Translations under genes and position numbers: made by a program | Notes under the pieces: generated by a model | What the model was told of the DNA's origin: nothing | Database searches by the model: none | The model's input: only the letters and a program-made list of their open reading frames with translations | Shown here: piece by piece, positions 5,275-53,154 of the stretch | Position numbering within the stretch: the first letter of the stretch is position 1 | Layout of the letters: each line of letters starts with the position of its first letter | Assembly: GCA_038087875.1 (NCBI GenBank) | Contig: JAXLNO010000831.1 | Coordinates: forward strand, 62,001 to 126,000 | Length of the DNA stretch: 64,000 nucleotides | Reading direction: 5' to 3' | Origin: Malacoraja senta | Taxonomy: Eukaryota

Positions 5275-5727
5275 GTCAAGTCAAGTCAAGTGAGTTTATT
5301 GTCATGTGTCCCTGGTAGGACAATGAAATTCTTGCTTTGCTTGAGCACAACAGAACATAGTAGGCATTTACTACAAGGCATTCTATAAATATATACACAA
5401 TGGTCAATATACTGATAACGTGCAAATAACAGTATTGGCTAGTAAAGTTCAGTGTTATGTCCGAGCCAGGTTTAATAGCCTGATGGCTGTGGGGAAGTAG
5501 CTGTTCCTGAACCTGGTCGTTGCAGTCTTCAGGCTCCTGTACCTTCTACCTGAAGGTAGTAGGGAGATGAGTGTGTGGCCAGGATGGTGTGGGTCCTTGA
5601 TGATGCTGCCAGCCTTTTTGAGGCAGCGACTGTGGTAGATCCCCTCGATGGAAGGGAGGTCAGAGCCGCTGATGGACTGGGCAGTGTTTACTACTTTTTG
5701 TAGTCTTTTCCTCTCCAGGGCACTCGT
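5275..5727 (-). mobile_element. Rex1/Babar-like LINE 3' fragment inserted in CR1
   Basis: (TTGAC)n tail on minus strand; splits CR1 endonuclease between WEL and NIQG. Confidence 0.6.
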
Positions 5728-6289
5728 TGCCGAATTTCAGGGTTAATATTCAGGGTTATACATCCTATAGAAAGGACAGGCAGGTGGGCAGAGGAGGGTG
5801 GGTAGCTCTGCTGGTGAGGGATGGAATTCAGTCCCTTGCGAGGGAAGACATAGGGACTGACGAGGTAGAGTCACTGTGGATTGAGTTGAGGAATTGTAAA
5901 GGCAAGAAGACACTAATTGGTGTTATTTACAGACCCCCAAATAGTAGCCTGGATGTAGGGTGTAAGTTGCAGCAGGAGTTAAAACTGGCATGTAACAAAG
6001 GTAATGCCACTGTGGTGATGGGGGATTTCAATATGCAGGTAGACTGGGAAAATCAGGTTGGTTCAGGACCCCAAGAAAGAGAGTTTATAGAATGCCTCCG
6101 GGATGGATTCTTAGAGCAGCTTGTAATGGAGCCGACCAGAGAAAAGGCAATTCTGGATTTAGTGTTGTCCAATGAACCAGATATGATAAGAGAACTCGAG
6201 ATAAAGGAACCGCTTGGAGGTAGTGATCATAATATGATTAGTTTTAACCTGCAATTTGAGAAGGAGAACGTTAAATCGGAAGTGGCAGT

Positions 6290-9200
6290 TGTAGATCAGT
6301 GCATGTTCCTTTAACATAATGACCTTACCACTACTAACCACTCCCCATTATCTTCAGTATAATTGTAACCTTCCCACCCCCAGCTCCCTCTCTAGCTCTG
6401 GTAACGGACCACGAACAGCTAGGGCAATATGTGTGTATACGACTACAATGTATGCAATAAACTAAGAGTGAAGACATTGCGTGTTTGACAAGTCTTTACA
6501 TGGTGTCAGAAGTGGGACACCTTCATTGCATCGTTGCGTCACCTGGCTCGGCGTTGCCGCCTGGACGCGTTAACCCCTGACCAAATGGTCAGAGATGTCC
6601 TAGTTCACGGTCTACAGGACGTGAAGCTACGGGCAGAGCTTCTGAGGAAGCCAGACCTCACTTTAATCGAGGCTTTGCATGCCTCTCGCATGGCTGCTGC
6701 TGTCGACTCCGTATCTCCCCCTGAGGCTCAGGACATTCATTATGCCGGTACTGCTGAACGCCCGCGGCACGATGGCCCGCCACGCCAGCGTAGCACTCCC
6801 GCGCCCGCGAGGGACAACCCTCGTCGATGCCCAAACTGCAACTTCGTCAGTCATCAATTTAATGTTTGCCCTGTGCTGGGAAAGACTTGTAATTTCTGTA
6901 AGAAGCTTAATCACTTCTCCGCAGTGTGCCGTTCCAGGGGCCAGCCTGTCCCTGCTCAGAGAAGGAGTCTACACAACCTGACTGTGACTGATAGTGTTTA
7001 TGGCTCCCAATACCTTTCAGACGAACTCCCTGATTCTGATACCAGTTCCTCCCAGGATGAATCGCTTGTTTTTTCAGTCTTGGGTGCACATGCTTTGATA
7101 GCTGATCCATCAGTTCGAGTTACTGTGAATCGAAAGACCTTATCTGCGAAGGTAGACACGGGGGCGTTTGCAAATGTTATGGCGTTAAGCCTCTTTCAGC
7201 AGATAAGATCTGGTGAGAAGGTTACTGCTGACGACTCCGGTCTCCACGCATATGGGGGGAGTGTGCTAGTTCCAGTCGGCAAGGCAACCCTTATCTGCAC
7301 AGTTCTCAAGGCCACTCGGCCCCTCTCTTTCCTCCTGCTGGAATCTGAGAATATTACTCTGTTGGGCGCCAGTGCGTGCCAGGACCTCGGTTTGGTTTCC
7401 TTCCACCGCGATATCCACCTGGTGCAGACCCCCATGGATCCCATGTGCGAGTACCCCGACCGTTTTCACGATGTATTTGGCAAACTACCCTGCAAGTACG
7501 AAATCGAGGTGGACCCGGAGGTCCATCCGGTAGTCCGCCCGGCTCACCGCGTCTCCTTTGCTATGAAGGACAGGGTGGAGTCGACTCTGCGCCAGGTGGT
7601 GGCCGTGGGCATCATCAAGGAGGTGAGTGATCCCACCCGGTGGGTCTCCACCATGGTCGTTGCTTCCAAGAAGGACAAGAGTGAGATTCGGATCTGTATA
7701 AACCCTAAGGACCTAAACCTTGCCATCAAACGCCCGCACTACCCCATGCGAACGGTGGAGGATGTCGCTGCACAGGTTGGCCCAGCCACTGTATTCTCTG
7801 TCCTCGATGCCAAGAGCTCTTTCTGGCAGATTCCACTGGATGAACGTTCATCTTTCTTGACCACGTTTGGTACACCTTTCGGCAGGTTCCGTTTCCTCCG
7901 CATGCCTTTCGGGATCAATTCTGCCAGCGAGGTTTTCCAGCGCACCATGGAGCAGCTGTTTGCCCATCTGCCGTGTGCTATCATCGTCGATGACATCTTA
8001 GTGTACGGAAGAGACGTCGCTGAGCACGACCTCCACCTCCGCCAAGTCCTGGATCGGGCTCGTGAGATCAACCTCAAACTGAACCCCAAGAAGTGCCGCT
8101 TCCGCGTCCCGGACGTCATCTACGTGGGCCAAGTTTTTACGGCTGAGGGTCTGAAACCAGACCCACAGAAGACAGCTGCGGTCTCTGGGATGCCAGCTCC
8201 GGTCAACGTGCCCAGCCTGCAGCGCTTCTTGGGCATGGTGAACTACCTGGGGAAATTCATTCCCGACCTCAGCGAGCTGAGTGCGCCCCTGAGGGAACTG
8301 ACCAAGAAGGACACTGCCTGGGTTTGCTACCCGCTGCATCAGGCAGCCTTCGATGACCTAAAGTCCCGGCTGGTTCGCACCCCCACTCTAAAGTTCTTCG
8401 ACTTAAAGCGCCCCATCGTCCTTACCTGCGATGCCTCAAGTTTTGGTCTCGGTGCCGCCTGCCTGCAAATCTACGACCGCCTGCAACTACCTGTCTCCTA
8501 TGCCTCCCGCACTATGACCCCTACCGAGCAACGCTACGCTCAGATCGAGAAGGAGCTCCTTGCCGTGGTGTTTGCCTGCTCGAAGTTCAAGGACTACATT
8601 CTAGGTAACACTTTCACTATTGAAACCGACCACCAGCCGCTGGTCACGATCTTGAACAAACCGATCCACGTGGCTTCTTCCCGTTTGCAGCGTATGATGC
8701 TGCAGCTCCAACGCTTCACGTTTCAAATCGTGTACCGAAAGGGCAAGGACATGTTTGTGGCCGACACGCTGTCCCGCGCACCGCTGGCGTCTACTGCCCG
8801 CCACCCGTACGATTCATCCGACCTGATGGTACTAAACGTTAACTTTGTGCCTTCCCAGCAGATGCAGTCCCTGATTCACCACACTGCCAATGATCCTGCC
8901 CTGCAACAGCTTGTAGACGTCATCCGTCGTGGCTGGCCTGACCGTCGCTCATCCTTGCCGGCTGGTGCTGCGCCCTACTTCCTAGTCTGGGATGAACTTG
9001 TGCTGCATGCCGGCGTGGTGGTGAAGGGCCACAAGGTTGTGGTGCCTGCTGCACTGCGGGACCACCATTTCCAAACTGCCCACAGCGGCCAACCCGGATC
9101 CGATGCCACCCTGTCCCAGGCCCAGAGCCAATTTTATTGACCCGGCATGGCACAGGACATCCGGGATAGGGTCTCCGCCTGCTCAACCTGCAATACCCTC

Positions 9201-10637
9201 TCTCCCCACCAGCAACGCCAGCCACTCCTGCAACAGCCTGCCCCCGCCCTGGCGTGGATGGCGGTCGCTACGGACATATTTGAGTGGCGTGGCAAACATT
9301 TCCTGGTCCTTGTCGACTCCTACTCCAGCTGGTTCGAGGTGGAGCGTCTGCACTCCCTCACTTCTGCTGCTGTCATCGGGAAGCTGAAACGCAACTTTGG
9401 GACCTTTGGCATTCCTGTGACTGTGCAGTCTGACAATGGGGGCCAGTTCTCGAGTGCTGAGTTCCGCGCCTTCGCTGCCGCCTATAACTTTCGCCACATC
9501 ACCAGCAGCCCTGAATACCCGCAGAGCAACGGCCTTGCAGAGCGCGCCGTCCGCAGTGCCAAGGAGCTGTTGGAGCATTGTAGACTATCGCATTCGGATT
9601 TTTATCTGGCACTACTGAATCTCCGAAATATTTGTCGCGACCATGCCCTAGGCTCGCCTGCTCAGCGGCTCATGTCCCGCACCACACGCCCTCCGATCCC
9701 TGTCTCCCAGCGATCCCTACAGCCCGCAGTCCGCAGCCCTGCTGCTGTCCAGGAGCGCATTGCCCAGAAACAGGCCGTCCAGAAGCGCTCCCACGACAAA
9801 TCATGCCGTCCCCTTCAGCCCCTCTTCAACGGCCAGGTCGTCCGGATGCAGTCCCCCTCCGGACACCACCAACTGGCTGTTGTCATCGACTTTGCTGACT
9901 CTCCGCGCTCTTACCTAGTTGACTACGAGGGCACCATCTACCGCCAGTCCCGGCAGCATTTGCTGCCGGTTAACGAGCCCGCTCCGCCTCCCGCAGCCAC
10001 TTTTGCTCCCCCGGTTGCTACCTCTTTGCCTACCGCTCCTCCCATGCCCAGGACTCTGCCCTCTCATCCCTTGGTGCCCCATTCTCCCACTGCTCCTCCT
10101 GGCCCCCCCATCATACCTCTCCCGCTCGCGTGCCCGCTGCGGTGCCCGTTTCTCCTCCCCGGTCTCCTCGTCCTCCCTCTCCTGCTCATTCTCCTGTCAT
10201 CTCCCCCAGCACGCCTCCTGCTCCTGTACCTGCTCTTCCTTCGGAGGGGGGGAGAGGTGGGCTGCGTAACCCCTCCGGGCATCTGGTCAAGCCGCCTGAG
10301 CGTTACGGGGAGTTTGCTTGAATGTTTCAAGTTTTTTCCTGACGATGTACGCGCGGGTTTGTGTCTAGCATATGAGTCGTGGTCTCACTGACATCATTGT
10401 AATGTTTCCCTTTCCAAGGGGAAGGATGTAGATCAGTGCATGTTCCTTTAACATAATGACCTCACCACTACTAACCACTCCCCATTATCTTCAGTATAAT
10501 TGTAACCATCCCACCCCCAGCTCCCTCTCTAGCTCCGTTAACGGACCACGAACAGCTAGGGCAATATGTGTGTATACGACTACAATGTATGCAATAAACT
10601 AAGAGTGAAGACATTGCGTGTTTGACAAGTCTTTACA
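6290..10637 (+). mobile_element. Gypsy LTR retrotransposon with both LTRs and 5-bp TSD GCAGT
   Basis: 211-bp TG..CA LTRs (6290-6500, 10427-10637; 4 differences), PBS TGGTGTCAGAAGTGGGA matching tRNA-Leu 3' end, PPT AAGGGGAAGGA. Confidence 0.97.
6516..10391 (+). pseudogene. Gypsy gag-pol: N-truncated gag (CCHC), PR (VDTGA), RT (IVDD), RNase H, integrase; one TGA at 9138-9140
   Basis: ORFs 6534-9140 and 9147-10391 are in the same frame; FY*PGM corresponds to YWP (TGG>TGA). Confidence 0.93.
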
Positions 10638-31051: not shown

Positions 31052-31103
31052 ATGCTTCTTTTTACCTTACTGAACACTTACGGTGTGGCCACTGTCTCCT
31101 CTG
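31052..31103 (+). CDS. MHC class I leader (signal peptide) exon
   Basis: ATG 31052, MLLFTLLNTYGVATVSS, then G|GTAAGC phase-1 donor; G+AT gives Asp1 of alpha1; lies about 140 nt after an X2-Y box. Confidence 0.8.
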
Positions 31104-31435: not shown

Positions 31436-32563
31436 CCCGTTCCTTTTCTCCAGAGATGCTGCCTGACCCGCTGTTACCTCAGCATTTTGTCTACCTTCGG
31501 CCCACAATGTCTGTGCCGAACAAACTAAACTAATCTCCTCTACCTGTATGTGATCTGTATCCGGCCATTCCCTGCCTATCTATGTACCTATCTAAAAGCC
31601 TCTGAAATGTAACTGTTATATCTGCCACCATCACCACAACCACCACTGGCAGCGCGTTACAGATGTCCACCACCCTCCACATAAAACAACTTGCTCCGCT
31701 CATCTCCTTTGAACATTGCTTCTCCAACCTTAAAGTGATGTTCTCTGGTCTTCAACATTTCCACCCTGGGAAAAAGGTTCTGGCTGTCCACTCTGTCTGT
31801 GCCTCTCACCATGTTGTGCACTTTCATCAGGTCTCCCTTCAACCTCCAGTATACAAGAGAAAACAATCCATGTTTGTCCAATCTGTCCTTGCACTAATGC
31901 CTCAGACAGAATTCAGGTGATGTGCACTTTCAATAAAGAAGTGACTTCTGCATTAGTAGGTGTTCCACCTCTCCAAGATTTCCTCAGCTGGTGTTAGACA
32001 CCCACATGATGGTAAAATTCAGCCTGCATTAAATGACCAATCAATGTTGTGTTAATGTTGTTGCCATCTTGTTGTTTGTTGCATGCTTCCTGTCCTGCAG
32101 ACCCTATCCATTACCCCATCACCACTTCCCCAGAAGACGATAATGAGATTTAAGAAGCTTGAGGATAGGCACGTGGATATGCAGGGAATTGAGGGATATG
32201 AATCATCTACAAGCATGAAGAGTTTAGTTGAACTTGACATCATGTTCGGCACAGACATTGTGGCCGAACTCCAGCCCATTACACCCTTAATGAACAAAAA
32301 TCTATCAATCTCAATCTGGAAATTTTCAAGTGGGCAACATATTCAACAGATTACAGAATCGAGAACCAGAGGACATAGGTTTAAATTGAGGGGGGAAAGA
32401 TTGAATGGGAATCTGATGAGCAATTTCTTCCCACACAATGGTACCTTTCTAACTATTCTGACATTCATCAAGGCTTGGAGATTACAAACCTACTCGTCCT
32501 GAAAGTTTAATCCCATTGTTATCAAATGAAAGTAAATATAATGGTGTTAAAGAAGGAACTGCA

Positions 32564-34576
32564 TTTTAATTCCTAGTCTATCCCATTGTGTATAAGCTTT
32601 ATCTATAATAGAAGGACTAAACGAAGGGTTATTGACTATAGGTAATAAAAGTGATAAGTTTCTTAATTTTAAATTTTGTTTTATTTGTTTCCAAATACGG
32701 ATTGTACTATGAATAATTGGGTTCTTATTATAGTTTATGTTATTCAATTTCATTGGAGAGAGGAGGATCGCTCCAATGTTTCTAGAGGAGCAATCCTCTT
32801 TCTCCATTACAATCCAGTCTACTTGCTGGGCGGAGTTATCCATCAGTTGAATCATGTTTTTAATATTTACTGACCAATAATAATACATAAAATTGGGTAG
32901 TGCTAGACCCCCCAATACTTTAGATTTATTCAAATGGGTTTTTTGTATTCTATGTGATTTATAGTCCCATATAAAATTAGTGATATCTGAGTCGAGTTTT
33001 TTAAAAAACTTCTTAGGTAAGTATATAGGAATTGATTGAAATAGGTATAAAATTTGTGGTAAAAAGATCATTTTTATTGCGTTTATTCGGCCTATTAAAG
33101 ACATCGGAAGCGTTTTCCAGAATTTAATTAATGTATTCAGTTTATTAAGTAGGGGGTCAAAATTTGCCCTGAGCATACCTTGATATGCTCTGGTAATTTC
33201 GATTCCCAAATATTTAAATTTTTCTGTAGCTATTTTAAAAGGGAATTTATCACTTTTATTACCTATAGTCAATAACCCTTCGTTTAGTCCTTCTATTATA
33301 GATAAAGCTTATACACAATGGGATAGACTAGGAATTAAAACGCTTGGTGACTTGTATGAAACTGGAAAATTACTTTCATTTCAACAATTACAAATAAAAT
33401 ATAAACTCGGAAATAATCAATATTTTAAATACTTTCAAATATGCGACTATTTGAAAAAATATATAAAAGATCATCATAATAACCCAGCAGATGTACTGGA
33501 CGAGGCAATGCAGACAAAAGCGGAATCAGCAAACTTAATATCATATTTGTACAATATTATCTTAAATGTACAAATACCATCTACGGAGGGTATCAGAAGA
33601 GACTGGGAACAAGAGTTAGCCATTAAAATTTCAAAGGAAAGTTGGAATGAATACTTATTAAAAGTACATAAATGCTCGATTAATGTAAGACACACTTTAA
33701 TACAATTTAAAATTTTACATAGATTATATTATTCGAAAACTAAAATTCATAAAATTTTCCCAAACGTATCATCTATTTGTGATAAATGTCAATCCCAAGA
33801 AGCAACTATAGCGCACTCATTTGTCTTCTGTACAAAAATTCAAAAATTTTGGAATGAAATTTTTGAAATCTTTACAAAGTTATTTAAAACAAGACTGATA
33901 CCCAAAGCAGAATGGATTATCTTCGGAATAACGGAAGATGATCCAGAACTAAATGTGTTTCAAAAGAAATTAATGGATTATGGGTTAATAACTGGAAAAA
34001 AGCTAATTCTAAAATTTTGGAAGAAGGCTCCAATACCAACTATAAATATGTGGATTTCAAATATGTTTGAAACACTACACCTTGAAGAGATAAGACTCCT
34101 CCTAGCAGGTAAACCAGATCACTTCCACCTGACGTGGTCTGCATTTATAGAATTATTACAAACATAGGGTGCAAAAGTACTTTAAAAAAATAAAAAATTG
34201 AGGTCGGGTAAGGGGGGATGATAGTTGAAGAGTTGGTATGTCCTATTTACGTGATGCTCAAAAAAAAAAAAAAAAAAACATTTGTTTTTCTTTTTTTCTC
34301 TCTCTCTTTTCTTTTCTTAGGGCCTATTTCTTAACTCCTTTTTTTTTTTGTCTTTAATTTCGCTTTCATAGGGTCCTCGTCCTTTTTTTTTTTTTTGTTT
34401 GTTGTTACATTTTCTACACTTTTCTACACTTGCACTTTTTCCTTCACTTTCTTCTCTCTTTCAATCTTTTCTTTCTTTAGCGTAAAAAAAAAATAAAGGG
34501 AGTACATTAATTGTAAGAAGATATAAATGACGAGTATTAATGTATGTGGCTGTGATGTAATGTACTTCTAATAAAT

Positions 34577-34604
<28 letters not shown>
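32564..34604 (+). mobile_element. Young 5'-truncated L1 with inverted 5' segment; 15-bp TSD AAAGAAGGAACTGCA
   Basis: 32564-33248 antisense, 33247-34604 sense with AATAAA and poly(A); TSDs 32549-63 and 34605-19; TT|AAAG target. Confidence 0.96.
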
Positions 34605-34607
<3 letters not shown>

Positions 34608-35439
34608 GAAGGAACTGCAGATGCTGGAAAATCGAAGGTACACAAAAATGCTGGAGAAACTCAGCGGGTGCAGCAGCATCTATGGAGCGAAGGAAATAGG
34701 CAACGTTTCGGGCCGAAACCATATAATGGTGATGGCCATGTTGAAATAATAACATATAAAACAAAAATCCTCGGCTGTGGAGTGTTTTGGGAAGCCACAT
34801 GGATTTTATCGTTACTGTATTCCACTCTTAGCCGTCTTATGTTTCTCCTGGTAACACTGAAACAGACACTTCTAACTCTGCCCTCGGGGCCCCTTCTCCC
34901 TTCACTTAAACACATGAACTTTGACACTGTCTGGTGTGCTGCATGTAATCTTTATCACAGAACAAATACTGCTTATGCATGTGGAAACAAGAAACTGCAC
35001 ATGCTGGTTAATACACATAAAATACTGGAGTAATTCAGCTGGTCAGGCAGTATGTCTGGAGAACATGGTTAGGTGATGTTTCAGTTGACACAAGTGTAGG
35101 AAGGAAGTGCAGATGTGTAAGAAGGAACTGCAGAAGCTGATTTAAACCGAAGATAGACAATAAAGCTGGAGTAACTCAGCGGCACAGGCAGCATCCCTAG
35201 AGAGAAGGTATGGGTGACGTTTCGGGTCGAGACCCTTCTTCTGACTGCTGATGCAGATGCTGGTTTACACCGAAGATAGATACAAAAGGCTGGAGTAACT
35301 CAGCAAGTCAGGCAGCATCGCTGGAGAAAAGGAATAGGTGGAGTTTCAGGTCAAGACACTGCATCAGACAGAGTCGGGGGTGCATATATTTCATTGTACT
35401 TTGTCATATCTCTCGGTTCTCTGTCCCCTGACTCTCATT

Positions 35440-37100: not shown

Positions 37101-37361
37101 ATTTACACCATCTTGCATTTTACTACCTGTTGAACCATGGATTGAATGAGCTGCCTGAGTACAGTATGGTAGCAATGCTGGATGACGTCCAGATAGCATA
37201 TTTTGACAGCACACTAGAGCGGGCTGTTCCCAGACAGCGATGGATGGCCCAGTCTTTCCCGCAGGATCACTGGGATTCAATGGCCATCACAGTTGCAGGT
37301 TTTCATGGGATTGTCAGAGGAAATGCTGAGATAGTCTACCAACAGCAACATGGTATCTCGA
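37101..37361 (+). CDS. MHC class I alpha1 exon
   Basis: ttgcag| acceptor, A|GTAAGT donor; (D)LHHLAFYY...LPEYSMVAMLDDVQIAYFDS...RAVPRQRWM...DHWD, the class I alpha1 pattern. Confidence 0.92.
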
Positions 37362-37489
37362 GTAAGTGTCGTGAGCGGACCTGGGGTAGAGACCCAGTGA
37401 TGACACAGATGGATTTTGTTTTAGTTTTATTGTTGACACATGATTCTCTGATACACTTTTTTTGCGTTAGTCAATCACATCAAAGAAAA

Positions 37490-38050
37490 CTATTCATAAA
37501 TACAATCAAACCAAACTCGTACAATAGGTAGAGCAAAGAGTGCAGAATGTAGTTCTCAGCATTGTAATGTACCAGTGCCAGAGACAAAGTCCAGTGTCTA
37601 CAATGGGGTTGAGGTGAACCCTAGCATAAGGGAGGACTGTTCAGAAACCTGATAACATAGGGGAGGAAACAGTTACTGAGTCTGGTGGTGCACGCTTTAA
37701 TGCTTACGTACCTTCTGCAGGAAGAAGAAGGAGTGACCAGAACGGGACAAATCTTTGATTATGTTGTCTGCTTTCCTGAACCAGTTGAAATACAGATGGA
37801 TTCACTGGTGGGGAATCATGTTTGTGTGATCGACTGTGCTACATCTCCACCTCTCTGCCATTTCCAGCGGTCTTGGGCAGAACTCTTTCCAAACTAAGTT
37901 GTGATGCAACCTGTCAGTATGCTTTCTATGGCACATTTGTAGAAGTTTGTAAGAGTCATTGGAGATGCCGCATTTCCTTAGTCTCCTGAGGCAGTAGGGG
38001 AACCAGAAACTCTCAACCTTTTTCACTTCAGCACCATTGATGCTGTTTCA
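37490..38050 (-). mobile_element. Rex1/Babar-like LINE 3' fragment in class I intron 2
   Basis: CLRRLRKCGIS-like RT C-terminal remnant in ORF 37802-38026. Confidence 0.6.
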
Positions 38051-38730
38051 GACATTTACTCCATAACATTTTGATAGAGACACGGCCCATCGTCTATATT
38101 TAATGTGTCCTAACTGCTGAACACACAGTCATAACAGTTGGCTGGTGATAGTCTCTTTATGGGTTAAGCATTTGATATTCAACACCAGTAATAAGTGGAT
38201 GGATTGGATCATCTGTTTTGTTGGGCTGGAATGAGGGAGAAACCATTAGTTTATTTATAGCCTGATCATCTAGAGATGGGATCTTGATTTAAGCTGGTTG
38301 ATGGTGACTATGAGGTATTCCCTCAGTAATAATATTGTGTTAATCCAGCATCCCCTCAATATTGGCAACAATCCTCAGAGGGTGTAGCAATCCCACACAG
38401 TGCAACAGCCTTGATGTACTTCCCATCTGCATTGCCTTAACCTTCAGACTGACCTGTTGGCTCTGTAGCATTGCCCATCTGACAATGCACTTCTTCCTCT
38501 GTTCTTTATGTACGACAGTGCAGAATCTGAGTTCCACCCTTCTGACACAGCAGAACTCCTTTAGTGTTACATCCGCAACAGTAAAGCTCCCCCCCCATAA
38601 CACTTGAGGTTAGTCCATGCCCTCAGTATATAAACCATGGGTCATTGAGTCACACATCATGGAAACCGGCCCTTCTGCTCACTGAATCCACATTGATCAT
38701 CCATTGTGCTAAGATGGAGTCACAGCAAAC

Positions 38731-39008
38731 TGCAGATGCTGCCAATCTGAATTTAAAACAAACAGGAGGAACTCAACGAGTCAGGCAGCATGCTGTGGAA
38801 AAATGGACAGAAAACATATGAGACCAGGACCATTTAGAGTGATGGGGTAGAGTGGAGAAAGCTGGAAAAGAAAAGTAGTCTGTGTAGGATAGTGTTAATA
38901 TGCGGGGACCACTGGTCGGTGCGGACTCGGTGGGCCGAAGGGCCTGTTTCCGCGCTGTATCTCTGAGCTAAACCTGCTCCTGTGCTGTACAGCTCCATGT
39001 TGTGTTCT
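38731..39008 (+). repeat. 278-bp direct repeat, left copy, flanking L1
   Basis: Identical by eye to 42962-43239. Confidence 0.95.
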
Positions 39009-42000
39009 TTTTTTTTTTTTTTTTTTTTTTTAATTTTTATTTATTAGAAGTACATTACATCACAGCCACATACATTAATACTCGTCATTTATATCTTCTT
39101 ACAATTAATGTACTCCCTTTATTTTTTTTTTACGCTAAAGAAAGAAAAGATTGAAAGAGAGAAGAAAGTGAAGGAAAAAGTGCAAGTGTAGAAAAGTGTA
39201 GAAAATGTAACAACAAACAAAAAAAAAAAAAGGACGAGGACCCTATGAAAGCGAAATTAAAGACAAAAAAAAAAAGGAGTTAAGAAATAGGCCCTAAGAA
39301 AAGAAAAGAGAGAGAGAAAAAAAGAAAAACAAATGTTTTTTTTTTTTGAGCATCACGTAAATAGGACATACCAACTCTTCAACTATCATCCCCCCTTACC
39401 CGACCTCAATTTTTTATTTTTTTAAAGTACTTTTGCACCCTATGTTTGTAATAATTCTATAAATGCAGACCACGTCAGGTGGAAGTGATCTGGTTTACCT
39501 GCTAGGAGGAGTCTTATCTCTTCAAGGTGTAGTGTTTCAAACATATTTGAAATCCACATATTTATAGTTGGTATTGGAGCCTTCTTCCAAAATTTTAGAA
39601 TTAGCTTTTTTCCAGTTATTAACCCATAATCCATTAATTTCTTTTGAAACACATTTAGTTCTGGATCATCTTCCGTTATTCCGAAGATAATCCATTCTGC
39701 TTTGGGTATCAGTCTTGTTTTAAATAACTTTGTAAAGATTTCAAAAATTTCATTCCAAAATTTTTGAATTTTTGTACAGAAGACAAATGAGTGCGCTATA
39801 GTTGCTTCTTGGGATTGACATTTATCACAAATAGATGATACGTTTGGGAAAATTTTATGAATTTTAGTTTTCGAATAATATAATCTATGTAAAATTTTAA
39901 ATTGTATTAAAGTGTGTCTTACATTAATCGAGCATTTATGTACTTTTAATAAGTATTCATTCCAACTTTCCTTTGAAATTTTAATGGCTAACTCTTGTTC
40001 CCAGTCTCTTCTGATACCCTCCGTAGATGGTATTTGTACATTTAAGATAATATTGTACAAATATGATATTAAGTTTGCTGATTCCGCTTTTGTCTGCATT
40101 GCCTCGTCCAGTACATCTGCTGGGTTATTATGATGATCTTTTATATATTTTTTCAAATAGTCGCATATTTGAAAGTATTTAAAATATTGATTATTTCCGA
40201 GTTTATATTTTATTTGTAATTGTTGAAATGAAAGTAATTTTCCAGTTTCATACAAGTCACCAAGCGTTTTAATTCCTAGTCTATCCCATTGTGTATAAGC
40301 TTTATCTATAATAGAAGGACTAAACGAAGGGTTATTGACTATAGGTAATAAAAGTGATAAGTTTCTTAATTTTAAATTTTGTTTTATTTGTTTCCAAATA
40401 CGGATTGTACTATGAATAATTGGGTTCTTATTATAGTTTATGTTATTCAATTTCATTGGAGAGAGGAGGATCGCTCCAATGTTTCTAGAGGAGCAATCCT
40501 CTTTCTCCATTACAATCCAGTCTACTTGCTGGGCGGAGTTATCCATCAGTTGAATCATGTTTTTAATATTTACTGACCAATAATAATACATAAAATTGGG
40601 TAGTGCTAGACCCCCCAATACTTTAGATTTATTCAGATGGGTTTTTTGTATTCTATGTGATTTATAGTCCCATATAAAATTAGTGATATCTGAGTCGAGT
40701 TTTTTAAAAAACTTCTTAGGTAAGTATATAGGAATTGATTGAAATAGGTATAAAATTTGTGGTAAAAAGATCATTTTTATTGCGTTTATTCGGCCTATTA
40801 AAGACATCGGAAGCGTTTTCCAGAATTTAATTAATGTATTCAGTTTATTAAGTAGGGGGTCAAAATTTGCCCTGAGCATACCTTGATATGCTCTGGTAAT
40901 TTCGATTCCCAAATATTTAAATTTTTCTGTAGCTATTTTAAAAGGGAATTTTAAAAGATGTGTTGAATCTTTCGGTTTTATTGACATAATTTCACTTTTA
41001 TTCCAATTTATTCTATATCCAGAAAAAGATCCGAAGTCTTCAATTAAATTTAATATATTTGGTATAGTGATTTGAGGTTTTGTGATATACAATAATATAT
41101 CATCCGCGTATAAAGATATTTTATTATATGAGTCTTTAGTATTATATCCATGAATATCAGGGTGTATTCTAATTTTTTCTGCTAGCGGTTCAATAATGAG
41201 AGCAAACAGCTGTGGTGATAATGAGCATCCTTGTCTATTTCCCCTTGATAGTTGAAATTTCGAGGATAATATGTTATTAGTAAGTATTCTAGCTGTAGGT
41301 TTGTTATATAGTAACTTAATCCATAAAATAAAATTCTCTCCCAGTTGAAATTTTTGTAATACTTTATCCATATAATTCCATTCTACTTGATCAAATGCTT
41401 TTTCAGCATCCAGCGAAATAATTGATAATTCTTGATCTTCAGATTTGTGTGAGTGCATTATGTTGAGTAGACGTCTCATATTATTAGAAGAGTATCTCTT
41501 AGGGATAAACCCTGTCTGATCTGGGTTTATTAATTTACTAATGTATTTACTTAATCTTCTGGCTAATGTTTTCGCTAATATTTTTTGATCTGTGTTTAAC
41601 AATGCTATAGCTCTATATGAGCCAGGATCTTCTAAATCCTTATTTTTCTTAGGTATTAATGTAATCGTTGATTCCGCTAATGTATCAGGTAGTATTCGTT
41701 TTTTAAAAGCGTATTGGTACATTTTTTGTAATCTTGGTATTATTTTTTCATAAAAGTTTTTATAAAATTCATTAGTAAATCCATCAGGGCCTGGTGTTTT
41801 TCCATTTTTTAGTGAGTTTATTGTATCTTCTAATTCCTTAATTGAGATTTGTGCACCCAGTTCCTCTTGTTCCTTCAGCTCTAACTTTGGAAGATTACAG
41901 GTATCCAAGAACTTTGTGATATTATTGGAATCAATTATCGTTTTAGATGTATACAAATTCTCGTAAAATTGCGCAAATCTTTTATTAATATCCTTCGGTG

Positions 42001-42961
42001 TTGTTAATAATTCCCCTTTATCTGATTTGATCTTTGGTATAGTATGTTCCTTTTCTCGTTTTTTTAGCTGGCGAGCCAAAAGTTTATGCGGTTTATCCCC
42101 AAATTCAAAGTGCTCTTGTTTTGTAATTTGAAAAAGTCTTATAAGTTTGGCAGATAATAATTTATTTAATTTAAATTTTAAAATTATTATTTTATTATGT
42201 TTATCTATTGTTGGATCTTTAGCATTATCTATATCCATTTGTCTAATAAGTTCTTCTAACTGTCTTTGTTCATTCTTATTCTTTTTATTTTGAAAAGCTT
42301 GATATGAAATTATAATACCCCTAATGTATGCTTTAAAAGATTCCCAAAGTAAAGTAGGCGATATATCTGAAGTATCATTTGTTTGAAAAAAGACCTCCAT
42401 TTGTTCTTTTAAATATATACTCGCTTGTGGATCTTTTAAAATTTGAGAGTTAAATCTCCAGAATGAATTATTCTTAGACAATCCTTCCAGTTTTAAAAAG
42501 AAAGTTAGTGGAGAATGGTCTGAAATTGAATTTGTATGATATATTGCATTAGATGTTTGGGGGATTAATTTTGTATCCAGCAGAAAGTAGTCTATACGTG
42601 AGTATGTCTTATGTACCATTGAGTAAAACGAATATTCCCTGCCAGTTGGGTTCACAATTCTCCAAACATCTGCTATATTAGTGTTGTTTATGTAGGTATT
42701 GAGGAGTTCCCCAGTTTTCGATTTCATATTCCCTCTCTGTTTTTGACTTGATTTATCTAAGTACGGGTCTAAAACACAATTAAAGTCTCCGCCTATTATA
42801 ACATTTTGATAGTTTGACTCTGCAATTATATTAAAGATTTTATTGAAAAAGTGGGGGTTATCAAAGTTAGGGGCATATATATTTACCAAAGTAAGTGGAG
42901 TGTCATGGATTTCTCCATTAACTATTAGGTATCTCCCTTCTATATCTGTTATAATATTCTT
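39009..42961 (-). mobile_element. Young L1, 5'-truncated within the endonuclease; uninterrupted ORF2 to the stop at 39440
   Basis: GGDFN, RIDYFL, SDHSP, LDAEKAFD, RQGCSLSP, LYADD and C-terminal Cys/His motif; 3'UTR and poly(A) (poly-T at 39009). Confidence 0.98.
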
Positions 42962-43239
42962 TGCAGATGCTGCCAATCTGAATTTAAAACAAACAGGAGG
43001 AACTCAACGAGTCAGGCAGCATGCTGTGGAAAAATGGACAGAAAACATATGAGACCAGGACCATTTAGAGTGATGGGGTAGAGTGGAGAAAGCTGGAAAA
43101 GAAAAGTAGTCTGTGTAGGATAGTGTTAATATGCGGGGACCACTGGTCGGTGCGGACTCGGTGGGCCGAAGGGCCTGTTTCCGCGCTGTATCTCTGAGCT
43201 AAACCTGCTCCTGTGCTGTACAGCTCCATGTTGTGTTCT
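42962..43239 (+). repeat. 278-bp direct repeat, right copy, flanking L1
   Basis: Identical by eye to 38731-39008. Confidence 0.95.
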
Positions 43240-43340
43240 GTTATGCCTGTTTGTACCATGCTGAGAACTGATTTGTAAATTGCCTCTCCCTTCCATCCAC
43301 TCTCCCCAACACAAATCCTCCACCCCTACCTCAGCCCCAG

Positions 43341-43616
43341 CTGTTTGCTTTGTGCAGGGTTTCTGCGGCTGTGAAGTGGACAGTGACAATTCCACTGATG
43401 GGTTTGTCAGACTGGGTTATGATGGGGAGGATGCCTGTGCTTTTGACAAGGACAGAATGCGCTGGATTGCACTACGTCCAGATTTCCAGATGCTAGCAGA
43501 TCGGTGGAACGTCAACACCTTCATGAACAAGTATTTTAAAGATCTCCTGGAGAAGGACTGTGTGAAGTGGCTGCGGATATATCTGGAGTGTGGACAAGAA
43601 GCACTACAGAGGAGAG
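43341..43616 (+). CDS. MHC class I alpha2 exon
   Basis: ccccag| acceptor gives a 276-nt phase 1-1 exon: VCFVQGFCGCEV...GYDGED..FDKDRMRW...DRW...EKDCVKWLRIYLECGQEALQRR; C101/C164 present; G|GTAC donor. Confidence 0.93.
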
Positions 43617-44820
43617 GTACACGACGTAGGCACTCTGACTGATGGGCCAGAGGATATCCTCTGGATAGATCAGGTGGGAAATATCATGCACGTCAGGCTG
43701 TCACTTGAGTAATTATTTAGTTTAGTTTAGAGATACAGCGCGGAAACCCACCGAGACCGCACCGAGCAGCCATGCCCGCACACTAACACTATCCTACACA
43801 CACTAGGGACAATTTGCATTTATACCAATCCAATTAACCTACAAATTTGTACGTCTTTCGAGTGTGAGGGGAAACCGAAGATCTCGGATAAAACCCACGC
43901 AGGTCACAGGGAGAACGTACAAACTCTGTAAAGACAAGCACCCGTAGTTAGTAACAAACCCAGGTCTCTGGCGCTGTAAGGCAGTAGTTCGACCGCTTCG
44001 CCACCCTGTTCTACAACGTGGGTATCAGTAAATTGTCTGGCAACGTGCCTCTTAGATGGAACCAGTGGGTAGGAAGTGCAAGTGAAAGATAAATATTGTA
44101 CCAGTGTCCTTTATCCACAGTCATATAGATATTCAGGAAATGGAGGAATATGTATCTTGGTCTTATGTTTAGCACCGACCTTGTGGCCTGAAGGGTCTGT
44201 TGCTGAACTGATCAGAAACCCAATCAGATTCTCTATTTGCCTCTATTACTCCTTGGGATGGTGACATTCAATTTCCAACAGTTCTCTATTTGAAGAACTT
44301 CTTCCTCCCATTCCCTCTTGGAATATTTAGTGTTATTATTCAGCAGAGATTCATGAACAGGTAGAAGCAATCATGTCTACAGTATCAATCCCAATGGTGA
44401 GTTATACTCCTCCATTGGGCCTGCATTCCCCTTTCATCTGTGCTGTCAGTTAAAGTCTGGAGCTAAGATAAGGAGCATGTCAGTGATATTAAAGCTAAAT
44501 GTTTTGTTGTTTTGCCAGAAATGCAAAATGAAAAGAGAAAAGGCTGTAAACTTTGTGCAAGATAGAACTGCAGATGCTGGTTTACACTGAAGATAGAAGA
44601 TGTTGGTGTAACTCAGTGGGTCAGATAGCATCTCTGGGCATTCCTTCTCTCCAGAATGCTGCCTGACCTGCTGAGTTATTCCAGCATTTTGGGTCTAGGC
44701 TGAAAACTTAGTTCAGCCAGAGAAAAAACTCTGATTGGGAAAGTGGTGAGTTGCAGTGATCTTACAATTGAAGGCTTTTGTTCATGTCTTCACTGATTCT
44801 GACTCTTCTTACACTTGCAG

Positions 44821-45093
44821 AAACCCCTGAGGTGTTTATTGGGATTAAACGTGATGGGTCGCAATCACTGAGACTCTCCTGCCTTGTCACAGGCTTCTAG
44901 CCACGGGCCATCGATGTAACGTGGCTGAGAGATGGTGAGGGGGTCCATGAGTCTGAATCCAGTGATCTGTTGCCCAATTGGGATGGGACTTACCAGCTGA
45001 AGAATACAATTCAACTGAATAGAGAAGATGTGGCAAAATTCTCCTGTTACATCGAACATGCAACTCTGCTGCAGGGAGTCAATGTTCCACAGG
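44821..45093 (+). CDS. MHC class I alpha3 (Ig C1) exon with in-frame TAG
   Basis: ttgcag| acceptor, G|GTAAGT donor; TPEVF...LSCLVTGF*PRAIDVTWLRDG...LLPNWDGTYQL...FSCYIEH. Confidence 0.93.
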
Positions 45094-46287
45094 GTAAGTG
45101 GCAAGTCAATGAGGCTGATCACTTGAGACCATAAACCTCCTGGACTGAGATAACAGTCTCAACTCACACTCTTAACTAAGCTGTGGATTTAGACTTTAGG
45201 CTTTAGAGATATGCTGCAGATACAGGCCCCTCAGCTCACTGAGTCCTCGCTGAATAGTGATCAACCCATACATTTACACTAACCTACACAGTACGGACAA
45301 TTTACAATTTTACCTAAGCCAAGTAACCTACAAACCTGTATGTCTTTGTAGTGTGGGAGGAAACCCACGCAGTCACAGGGAGAACATACAATGTCCTTGC
45401 AGACAGCACCTGTAGTCAGGATCAAACCCAGGTCTCTGGTGCAGTAAGGCAGCAGCTCTACCGCTACGCCACTGTGCCACCCATTATTAATTTGTGGTTA
45501 TCTAATTGCTCATAATTATTGATAGTCAATGGAATGTGGTTTTAGTTTAAGAGATACAGCGCAGAAACCGGCCCTTCAGCCCACCGAGTCTGCGTCAACC
45601 AGCGATCCCTGCACACTTACATTATCTTACTTATTAGGGGACAATTTACAATTATACCAAGCCAATTAACCTACAAACCTGTATGTCTTTGGACTGAGTG
45701 AGGAAACCGGAGATCCAGGCAAAACCCACGCAAGTCCCGGGGAGAAGGTACAAAACTCTGTACAGACGGGACCCGTAGTCAGAATTGAACCGGGTCTCTG
45801 GCGCTGTAAGGCAGCAGTTCCACCTAGTGGGCAAAGCAGAGCCAAATGGAATACAGTGTAGCAAGTGTCTGGTTTTACATTTTGGCAGTCGGAATAAAGA
45901 CATAGACTATTTTCTAAATGGGGAGAGAATTGAGAAACCTGAGCTACAAAGTGGGAGTACTAGTGCAGGATTCCCAAATAGTTCATTTGCAGATTGAGTC
46001 AGTGGTAAGTAAGGCAAATGCAATGCCAGCATTCATTTCGGGGGGCGTAGAATATAAAAACAATGATATAATGCTGAGGATTTATCGGGCACTGGTGAAG
46101 ACACATTTGGAATATTGTGAGCAGTTTTGGGCTCCATATTAGAAAGGATGTGCTGGCTTTGGAGAGGGTCGAGAGGATGTATGTCCTGGGGATGATTGAT
46201 TTAACGTATGAGGAGTGTTTGAAGTCTCTGTGCCTGTGCTCATGGGATTTAGAAGGATGAGGTGGGAATCTCATTGAAACCTACCAG

Positions 46288-50952: not shown

Positions 50953-52920
50953 CAGTGGCTTGCAAAAGTTTTCATACCCCTTGAACTTTTCCACATTTTG
51001 TCACGTTACAACCACAAACGTAAATGTATTTTATTGGGATTTTATGTGATAGACCAACACAAAGTGGTGCATAATTGTGAAGTGGAAGGAAAATGATACA
51101 TGGTTTTCAAATTTTGTTACAAATAAAAAACTGAAAAGTGTCGCGTGCAAAAGTATTCAGCCCCCCTGAGTCAATACTTTGTAGAACCACCTTTCGCTGC
51201 AATTACAGCTGCAAGTCTTTTGGGGTATATCTCTACCAGCTTTGCACATCTAGAGACTGAAATTTTTGCCCATTCTTCTTTGCAAAATAGCTCAAGCTCA
51301 GTCAGATTGGATGGAGAGCATCTGTGAACAGCAATTTTCAAGTCTTGCCAGAGATTCTCAATTGGATTTAGGTCTGGACTTTGACTGGGCCATTCTAACA
51401 CATGAATACGCTTTGATCTAAACCATTCCATTGTAGCTCTGGCTGTATGTTTAGGGTCGTTGTCCTGCTGGAAGGTGAACTTCCGCCCCGGTCTCAAGTC
51501 TTTTGCAGACTCTAACAGGTTTTCTTCCAAGATTGCCCTGTATTTGGCTCCATCCATCTTCCCCCATCAACTCTGACCAGCTTCCCTGTCCCTGCTGAAG
51601 AAAAGCATCCCCACAGCATAATGCTGCCACCACCATGTTTCACAGTGGGGATGGTGTGTTCAGGGTGATGTGCAGTGTTAGGTTTCCGCCACACATAGCG
51701 TTTTGCATTTAGGCCAAAAACTTCAATTTTGGTCTCATCTGACCAGAGCACCTTCCTCCACATGTTTGCTGTGTCCCCCACATGGCTTGTGGCAAACTGC
51801 AAACGGGACTTCTTATGGGCTTTTTTCAACAATGGCTTTCTTCTTGCCACTCTTCCATAAAGGCCCGATTTGTGGAGTGCACGACTAATAGTTTTCCTGT
51901 GGACAGATTCTCCCACCTGAGCTGTGGATCTCTGCAGCTCCTGCAGAGTTACCATGGGCCTCTTGGCTGCTTCTCTGATCAATGCTCTCCTTGCCCGGCC
52001 TGTCAGTTTAGGTGGACGGCCATGTCTTGGTAGGTTTGCAGTTGTGCCATACTCTTTCCATTTTCGGATGATGGATTGAACAGTGCTCCGTGAGATGTTC
52101 AAAGCTTGGGATATTTATTTATAACCTAACCCTGTTTTAAACTTCTCCACAACTTTATCCCTGACCTGTCTGGTGTGTTCCTTTGGCTTCATGATGTTGT
52201 TTGTTCACTAATGTTCTCTAACAAACCTCTGAGGCCTTCACAGAACAGCTGTATTTATACTGAGATTAGATTAATAATAATAATAATAATAATGGATGGG
52301 ATTTATATAGCGCCTTTCTAATACTCGGCGCTTTACATCGCATTATTCATTCACTCCTCAGTCACACTCGGTGGTGGTGAGCTACTTCTGTAGCCACAGC
52401 TGCCCTGGGGCAGACTGACGGAAGCGTGGCTGCTAATCTGCGCCTACGGCCCCTCCGACCACCACCAATCACTCACACACATTCACACGCAGGCAAAGGT
52501 GGGTGAAGTGTCTTGCCCAAGGACACAACGACAGTATGCACTCCAAGCGGGATTCGAACCGGCTACCTTCCGGTTGCCAGCCGAACACTTAGCCCATTGC
52601 GCCATCTGTCGTCCCGAGATTACACACAAGTGGACTCTATTTACTAATAAGGTGACTTCTGAAGGCAATTGGTTGCACTGGATTTTATTTAGGGGTATCA
52701 GAGTAAAGGGGGCTGAATATTTTCGCACGCGACACTTTTCAGTTTTTTATTTGTAAAAAAATTTGAAAACCATGTATAATTTTCCTTCCACTTCACAATT
52801 ATGTGCCACTTTATGTTGGTCTATCACATAAAATCCCAATAAAATACATTTACGCTTGTGGTTGTAACGTGACAAAATGTGGAAAAGTTCAAGGGGTATG
52901 AATACTTTTGCAAGCCACTG
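50953..52920 (-). mobile_element. Tc1 (IR/DR-type) transposon with defective DD34E transposase
   Basis: TA TSD, ~215-bp TIRs starting CAGTGGCTTGCAAAAG; ATG 52192 MKPKEHT..., [25 protein letters not shown]; TAA near the start and a frameshift near 51565. Confidence 0.97.
52274..52615 (-). mobile_element. tRNA-derived CORE-type SINE with L2-like tail nested in Tc1
   Basis: A/B boxes (TGGCGCAATGG, GGTTCGAATCC), GTGTCCTTGGGCAAGACACTT core, AAAGGCGCTATATAAAT tail + (ATT)n; approximate TSD AGATTA. Confidence 0.85.
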
Positions 52921-52933
52921 TATATGCCAACAG

Positions 52934-53154
52934 AGAGGGCAGTGAAAGAAGATATGAAGATTAGGATCGTGACTGGAGCTGTAATTGTTCCTCTCATTCT
53001 CCTGGGGATCATCCTTGGAATTGGTTGCTGGAAGAAGAGGAAAAAGAGAAAACCTTTCAATGAACAGGTACCAGCTGACAACAGCAGAGACCAGGAGAGG
53101 ACCATGAAGCACAATCAGCTTCCTTTGGGATGCAGAGGAGGTCTACCGGAATGA
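52934..53154 (+). CDS. MHC class I transmembrane/cytoplasmic exon (3' end uncertain: donor after 53067 or read-through to TGA 53154)
   Basis: caacag| phase-1 acceptor; IVTGAVIVPLILLGIILGIGCW followed by the stop-transfer stretch KKRKKRK. Confidence 0.8.

Follow-up and report, generated by a model that had tools for sequence, protein, structure and literature searches.

A class I-like gene with a hydrophobic groove and a premature stop in the skate Malacoraja senta, and its shark and ray relatives beside UGA

Whether the presentation of lipids or other non-peptide ligands is as old as the presentation of peptides is an open question in major histocompatibility complex (MHC) evolution. Two nonclassical class I (MHC-Ib) molecules, UFA and UGA, have lately been proposed as the shark counterparts of CD1. 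UFA was called 'very similar to CD1' on the basis of unpublished data (Veríssimo et al. 2023, PMC10751288), and a 2025 review described UFA and UGA as single- or low-copy and CD1-like, with crystal and mass-spectrometry data, quoted by personal communication, suggesting that both bind lipids (PMC12562908). A class I-like gene in a 64,000-nt stretch of DNA from the skate Malacoraja senta (the window; all positions below are window positions) raises the same question. A preliminary description of its alpha1 and alpha2 exons took it for a lipid or other non-peptide binder with a CD1-like groove and unusual cysteines, possibly of an undescribed lineage. Here we ask what such a groove may hold, to which lineage the gene belongs, and whether this copy is still functional.

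The gene belongs to an ancient shark and ray lineage, the sister of UGA; we consider it probable that the intact members of this lineage hold a conserved hydrophobic, lipid-like ligand, and that the window copy was recently inactivated. The lineage, that is, the window gene together with its shark and ray orthologues, is referred to as group A. The locus points to a further conserved lineage beside UGA, with an even more apolar groove and an automatic 'MR1-like' label, whose intact orthologues form a concrete set for expression and testing. The window itself is more ordinary, most likely a recently broken copy in a transposon-rich MHC-Ib region.

Gene structure and groove residues

The class I-like gene in the window lies on the plus strand and is complete, with five exons whose splice sites and phases all fit (Table 1). 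It has the layout of an MHC class I heavy chain, with an alpha1-alpha2 platform, a C1-set immunoglobulin domain, a transmembrane segment, a tail and phase-1 exons. The alpha1 exon matched Pfam MHC_I (PF00129) at 1.4e-5, which on its own is under the curated cut-off, and its best Protein Data Bank (PDB) match by phmmer was 9ch4_A (2.4e-22), which was also the best match of alpha3 (6.9e-15). The acceptor of the alpha2 exon is ambiguous by 6 nt, and the upstream alternative adds Pro-Ala, as in the NCBI model of the Leucoraja gene. In an exhaustive phmmer search the closest protein to alpha1, and the sole close match, was XP_055486430.1 (P0001) of the little skate Leucoraja erinacea (95% identity), which is named 'MHC class I-related gene protein-like, partial' and lies at the locus designated L001 (JAMYXN010000384.1). 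The leader exon was not found by an ab initio scan and was recovered solely with shark leader peptides, by tblastn with those of P0166 and P0168 (76% identity, 17 aa); an identical 17-residue leader peptide is present in Leucoraja at L001:100-150. Exon 5 aligns with the transmembrane segment and tail of P0001 and of other lineage members, and its cytoplasmic tail has no tyrosine, hence no tyrosine sorting motif.

To read the groove, positions 37103-37360 (alpha1) and 43343-43615 (alpha2) were translated, and human leukocyte antigen (HLA) numbering was assigned via ungapped phmmer alignments to class I chains, the loop before residue 15 being shorter by 2 residues. The translation recovered everything that the preliminary description had listed, namely the anchors, the missing sequon at 86 and the new one at 107, the apolar set, the small floor residues and the six cysteines. 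The classical set of peptide-terminus anchors is Y7, Y59, Y/R84, Y123, T143, K146, W147, Y159 and Y171. At these positions the window has F7, H59, Q84, A123, L143, R146, W147, L159 and Y171, so that two of the nine anchors (W147 and Y171) are kept and seven are lost (Y7F, Y59H, Y84Q, Y123A, T143L, K146R and Y159L). By its anchors the gene does not belong with the classical peptide-presenting class I genes of the UAA type. There is no sequon at position 86 and an N-S-T sequon at 107. The groove is lined by M63, V67, F70, I73, V74, I80, V81, V95, V114, L116 and F156, and its floor has the small residues G97, C99, A123 and C124.

The hydrophobicity of the groove was scored at 37 textbook pocket positions across lineages. 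The group A pocket has an apolar fraction of 0.62-0.70 and a mean Kyte-Doolittle value of 1.1-1.44, both the highest of the lineages sampled. The mean Kyte-Doolittle value is 0.50 for UGA, 0.16 for UFA and 0.20 for UAA/UBA-type sequences (maximum 0.94 among 54 sequences). Comparably apolar was a CD1b-like sequence (1.19, from a poor alignment, against about 1.3 for group A), and CD1 has likewise lost the peptide anchors. Within group A, identity is higher in the groove (0.83) than in the non-groove part of alpha1-alpha2 (0.72), while in the UAA/UBA-type clade the order is reversed (0.44 in the groove and 0.62 outside it). The group A groove is therefore not the more variable part of the platform, as it is in classical class I; by sequence, this is the pattern expected when a monomorphic molecule binds a single conserved class of ligand. 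The earlier claim that this is not a peptide-anchoring lineage is borne out by the two remaining anchors and by a pocket that is both the most apolar among the lineages sampled and strongly conserved.

The alpha2 domain of the window gene has cysteines at 93, 99, 101, 124, 164 and 174, a number that the preliminary description found unusual. In alignment A1, this holds for the lineage as a whole only in half of them: C99, C101 and C164 occur in every group A member, but C93 is private to the window copy, C124 is confined to batoids (sharks have Tyr or Phe) and C174 is patchy, with batoids and some of the sharks having it. In some sharks, Heptranchias among them, just C99, C101 and C164 are present, so that no partner for C99 is apparent and it probably sits in the groove floor as a free thiol. 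Extra disulfides or dimerisation are a matter of speculation.

Lineage, relatives and predicted structure

Searches with P0001 and a sawshark member as queries recovered a single orthologue from each species, across twelve genera: Leucoraja, Pristis, Mobula, Hypanus, Pristiophorus, Heptranchias, Scyliorhinus, Stegostoma, Hemiscyllium, Mustelus, Cetorhinus and Chiloscyllium. Their identity is 54-72% with the skate protein, against 33-36% for the next lineages, and 64-81% with the sawshark query; over both searches, other sequences reach 33-45%. All of them were automatically named 'MR1-like' by NCBI, and they were found in every elasmobranch order sampled. In the window itself, tblastn of exon pieces found no second class I gene. 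Most public models of the lineage (P0164, P0165, P0167 and P0169-P0172 of alignment A1) lack a proper signal peptide and begin within alpha1 or bear unrelated N-termini. The short leader exon, which lies 6-10 kb upstream in the two skates, was probably missed by the annotation pipelines.

The relationship of the lineage to other class I genes was examined in a tree (IQ-TREE, 49 rows, 270 columns) that did not include MR1. Group A formed a clade with 100/100 support, divided into batoid and shark subclades, and lay outside both UGA and UFA. Its sister (89/68) was the UGA clade, itself supported at 100/100 and also made up of batoids and sharks. Since each of the two sister clades holds both batoids and sharks, the duplication that separated them is, on this tree, older than the shark-ray split. 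Genes of both clades coexist in Leucoraja, Pristiophorus, Heptranchias, S. torazame and Cetorhinus, and in Leucoraja the group A gene and the UGA-lineage gene (P0157, L002) share a strand of contig JAMYXN010000384.1, at a distance of about 42 kb. The clades were identified by the PDB entries that they match, 9CH4 ('Crystal structure of shark nonclassical MHC CLASS I, UGA', released 2026-03-18) and 8GM8 ('... UFA'). A UGA-clade member matched 9CH4 at 4e-132 and a group A member at 4e-66, with no solved structure closer to the latter. A very divergent third group (P0021) matched 8GM8 at 4e-90.

In each shark, group A genes share chromosome-sized records with other class I genes, which fits the MHC linkage reported for all elasmobranch MHC-Ib genes (PMC10751288). 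Among the matches to group A there was no author-named sequence; the primary UGA paper was not found, so its authors may already name the lineage, and the supplement of PMC10751288 labels genes just 'MHC-Ib', without lineage. Likewise, no Squalus or author-named sequence was among the matches to the squalomorph group A query, which speaks against an identity with UCA, a Squalus sequence, as negative evidence only. The lineage is therefore unnamed in the accessible literature and forms a clade apart from UGA and UFA, as the preliminary description had suspected, but it is annotated ('MR1-like') in at least 12 genomes and is not unseen. It is better described as the sister of the already solved UGA, present in public annotations, than as a new kind of class I molecule. 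Another elasmobranch clade (P0182, P0220 and P0226) has eight of the nine peptide anchors. This clade may be the published UDA lineage, which likewise keeps eight of the nine.

UGA is the nearest relative of group A by several measures: it gave the best sequence match for alpha1 and alpha3 and the best structural match, and it is the sister clade and the genomic neighbor in Leucoraja. Both have G97, L116, A123, W147, M152, Y155, F156, L159, L160, D163 and Y171, and both have an AGFHG motif in the alpha1 helix. However, they are only 37-45% identical over alpha1-alpha2 and form separate clades that coexist in at least five species. UGA has F99 and retains Y7, Y59 and K146, whereas group A has F7, H59, R146 and C99, and the alpha1 helix of group A is the more apolar one, with M63, V67, I80 and V81. 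UFA is likewise an MHC-linked nonclassical class I molecule of elasmobranchs described as CD1-like (PMC10751288), but it is distant from group A, with an alpha1 E-value of 2.6e-12 against 8GM8, a structural Z score of 19.5 and a strongly diverged alpha2, and it forms a long branch of its own in the tree.

The platform was modelled with AlphaFold2 from the alpha1-alpha2 region of the Leucoraja protein, to which the window protein is 92% identical, and a 56-row alignment. The model had a predicted local distance difference test (pLDDT) score of 94.2 and a canonical platform of 4+4 strands and two helices. In a search of all PDB cluster representatives the best structural match was UGA, with a Z score of 25.2 and a root mean square deviation of 1.7 Å over 179 residues. 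Next by Z score were chicken CD1-1 (22.4), HFE (22.3), ZAG (22.2), classical class I molecules (about 21-22) and FcRn (21.6), followed at lower values by CD1d (20.1), UFA and EPCR (19.1). When the top Foldseek matches in the PDB were rescored, MR1 and classical class I molecules of birds and fish reached Z scores of about 24 and YF1*7.1 reached 23.8-24.0; the top 50 of this rescoring contained no CD1 entry. With CD1 scoring below MR1 and classical class I, the model suggests that the likeness to CD1 would lie in the chemistry of the groove and not in its backbone. The preliminary term 'CD1-like' thus stands for the groove chemistry, but the predicted backbone is nearer to UGA, MR1 and classical class I than to CD1. 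CD1 also differs in sequence (identity about 16-20%), in its Pfam family (MHC_I_3, which the window gene matched with 22.8 bits against a cut-off of 35) and in its YxxPhi sorting motif, which is missing from the group A tail.

MR1, after which the public models are labelled, gave the top score for alpha2, with a template modelling (TM) score of 0.87-0.88 in the structural comparison, and both MR1 and group A are conserved single-copy nonclassical genes. In contrast to this resemblance, group A joins the elasmobranch UGA in the tree, MR1 itself being outside the tree. MR1 captures its ligand by a Schiff base at Lys43. The corresponding site, which is the residue before V-P-R-Q when P0171 is aligned to MR1 by phmmer, is Ala in the skate and Cys in Hemiscyllium. 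We tentatively put forward a broader idea, which we think has a modest chance of being right, that the invariant, unpaired Cys99 of group A might take part in ligand binding, or even form a covalent bond with the ligand, as a thiol counterpart of MR1 Lys43. Group A would then be a third, unnamed elasmobranch MHC-Ib lineage with a hydrophobic groove, arisen with UGA before the shark-ray split and presenting a single conserved lipid-like ligand, and the skate copy would be a recent loss.

Premature stop and proposed function

The alpha3 exon of the window gene contains an in-frame TAG in place of the Tyr codon of the GFYP motif. The preliminary description ended at position 43616, short of the alpha3 exon, so the stop was missed there. 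The codon at the matching site in Leucoraja is TAC, and F-Y-P is invariant in 17 of the 17 sequences of alignment A1. The TAG is the one defect in a spliced product that otherwise has the make-up of a normal class I heavy chain. The product of the window copy would lose most of alpha3 and the membrane anchor; therefore, after a TAC-to-TAG nonsense change that we presume to be real and inactivating, the window copy is most likely a null allele or a pseudogene of recent origin.

To place the stop in time, the gene was compared with its Leucoraja orthologue. Window positions 30955-60040 are colinear with L001 at 87-92% identity, with exon identities of 96.6% for alpha1, 96.7% for alpha2 and 94.5% for alpha3 and a protein identity of 92% over 268 columns. 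The NCBI model at L001 is labelled 'partial' and runs 12 residues into intron 3, and the leader lies about 9.9 kb upstream of alpha1. Substitutions between the window and Leucoraja amount to 7.9% in non-exon sequence (14.1 kb aligned) and 4.9% in exons (Fisher p 1.5e-4). The ratio of nonsynonymous to synonymous substitutions (dN/dS) by the Nei-Gojobori method is 0.034/0.066 = 0.52 overall, 0.40 for alpha1-alpha2 and 0.78 for alpha3. When the 22 protein differences were polarised by other lineage members, 7 were derived in the window and 7 in Leucoraja, and the end branches in the tree are equal (0.045 and 0.042). One of the window-derived changes at conserved sites is F93C, where 10 of 11 relatives have Phe; F2L, L166R and the stop are the others. 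The constraint on the exons, the balanced changes and the equal branches suggest that moderate purifying selection held during most of the time since the split of the two skates and that the stop is young.

A second Leucoraja sequence, P0177 (L003; JAMYXN010000412.1, 10226-14271), was considered as the true orthologue and rejected. It is less similar to the window than L001, covers only window positions 37529-45816, from intron 2 to just beyond alpha3, and is a decayed partial duplicate, whose alpha2 is broken by a stop at the Cys164 codon and which lacks the leader, alpha1 and transmembrane exons. Despite this decay NCBI lists it as an 'MR1-like' protein of 263 aa. These copies show a transposon-rich MHC-Ib region with gene birth and death.

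We propose that the product of the lineage would be a type I membrane glycoprotein with a leader, an alpha1-alpha2 platform, a C1-set alpha3, a transmembrane segment and a short tail that lacks a tyrosine motif. Its groove, without seven of the nine peptide-terminus anchors and lined by invariant apolar residues and the invariant Cys99, would in intact members most likely hold a conserved hydrophobic, lipid-like, non-peptide ligand, by analogy with what is reported for UGA and known for CD1. The conserved C1-set alpha3 suggests that the heavy chain would pair with beta2-microglobulin, and the ligand would presumably be held for recognition by lymphocytes, perhaps T cells. The preliminary proposal of a lipid or non-peptide binder is in this sense reasonable for the lineage, whose nearest solved relative is UGA, but does not carry over to the window copy, which, judging from its alpha3 stop, is probably non-functional.

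Several points weigh against the reading of a lipid-binding lineage with an inactivated window copy. The predicted backbone resembles CD1 (Z 20-22) no more than it resembles MR1 and classical class I molecules (Z about 24), and the lipid claim for UGA is itself just a personal communication within a review (PMC12562908). The hydrophobicity values use HLA pocket positions carried over by alignment, and the dN/dS of 0.4-0.5 is based on 33 differences only. Moreover, the stop comes from one changed base in a gene that is otherwise intact with good splice sites throughout, and heterozygosity or, in rare cases, a miscalled base could account for the TAG.

These last points lead to the possibility that the gene is functional in this species. 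In that case the TAG would be a null allele of the individual that was sequenced, or else a base error, and the protein would work like its intact orthologues. The leader, splice sites, immunoglobulin cysteines, transmembrane segment and terminal stop codon are indeed all intact, the exons are better conserved than the flanks, and the rate is not accelerated relative to Leucoraja. However, repeats of at least 1 kb that are 100% identical were perfectly resolved in the window, which suggests an accurate long-read assembly, and the window-derived changes F2L, F93C and L166R fall at conserved sites. In addition, the protein databases hold no group A protein at least 97% identical to the window, which fits a non-coding annotation in this species, and Leucoraja carries a decayed partial duplicate. 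We regard a functional gene as unlikely, although it has a real chance. The opposite view, that the odd residues reflect the pseudogene decay of an ordinary class I gene, could draw on the stop codon and the private F93C, but it is already refuted by the alignment of orthologues, and we give it next to no weight. Every unusual groove residue but C93 is common to the intact orthologues of 12 species of sharks and rays, and the exons are under constraint; as far as the alignment tells, the odd groove is not a product of decay.

Regarding the ligand, the lineage might instead bind hydrophobic peptides or lipopeptides, for example N-acylated or leader-type peptides. N-acylated peptides are bound by chicken YF1*7.1 and by Mamu-B*098. 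Except for UGA, the predicted platform is as near to peptide and lipopeptide presenters as to anything (YF1*7.1 and the classical molecules of fish and birds), and W147 and Y171 are retained. The loss of seven of the nine terminus anchors and a groove that is invariant across the shark-ray split, which fits one conserved ligand class, make this rather improbable in our view. Still less probable, we think, is a molecule with no groove ligand at all, a receptor or chaperone type like FcRn, HFE or ZAG in which the apolar residues pack a closed groove. All three are good structural matches, and a packed core would likewise conserve the groove residues, but the small floor residues G97, C99 and A123 widen the groove rather than fill it, the sequence of the alpha2 helix has no helix-breaking proline, and the nearest relative, UGA, is reported to carry lipid (PMC12562908). 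We therefore retain a conserved hydrophobic, lipid-like ligand for the intact members as the probable reading.

Transposons and repeats around the gene

The positions of the exons, the stop and the repeats that interrupt the gene are given in Table 1.

Table 1. Features of the class I-like gene and its repeats (a slash marks the boundary between exon and intron; empty cells, not given).
Feature	Position	Strand	Details
Exon 1, leader	31052-31103	+	17 codons plus 1 base; donor G/GTAAGC; phase 1 join to exon 2 gives Asp1
Exon 2, alpha1	37101-37361	+	acceptor cag/AT; donor A/GTAAGT
Exon 3, alpha2	43341-43616	+	Pfam MHC_I 2e-16; PDB matches MR1 6e-17, 9ch4 2e-13
Exon 4, alpha3	44821-45093	+	acceptor cag/AA; donor G/GTAAGT; Pfam C1-set 6.9e-9; stop inside
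In-frame TAG	44898-44900	+	in place of Tyr in the alpha3 GFYP motif
Exon 5, connecting peptide, transmembrane segment and cytoplasmic tail	52934-53154	+	acceptor acag/AG; phase fits exon 4; ends TGA
L1 fragment, intron 1	33244-34610		about 1.37 kb; inverted copy of the 3' part of the intron 2 L1
281-bp perfect direct repeat, left copy	38731-39011		flanks L1; 100% identity
L1-type long interspersed nuclear element (LINE), intron 2	39012-42961	-	3.95 kb; intact 1178-aa open reading frame (ORF) 2 (39440-42976)
281-bp perfect direct repeat, right copy	42962-43242		flanks L1
Tc1/mariner transposase remnant, intron 4	51171-52102	-	ORFs; Pfam HTH_Tnp_Tc3_2 7.9e-26

ORF2 of the L1 in intron 2 matched Pfam RVT_1 (1.3e-39), Exo_endo_phos_2 and zf-RVT. 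The L1 and the 281-bp duplication are missing from the orthologous Leucoraja intron, where the repeat segment is single-copy (L001 12349-12601); therefore the duplication either arose with the L1 insertion or is an assembly artefact. A length of 281 bp is far above that of the usual L1 target-site duplication. The L1 fragment in intron 1 is 100% complementary to positions 39005-40363 (inverted repeats I1-I3) and has a zf-RVT match on an ORF at 33352-34164, so that the alpha1 exon lies between two L1 copies. Another piece, 300 bp long (32561-32860), has an identical match at 40264-40563. The L1 family is very young.

The remainder of the window consists of retroelements. A Ty3/gypsy-type retroelement with long open pol frames (RVT_1, RNase H and integrase) was observed at 6534-10391, and the endonuclease fragment of another LINE at 5727-6314.

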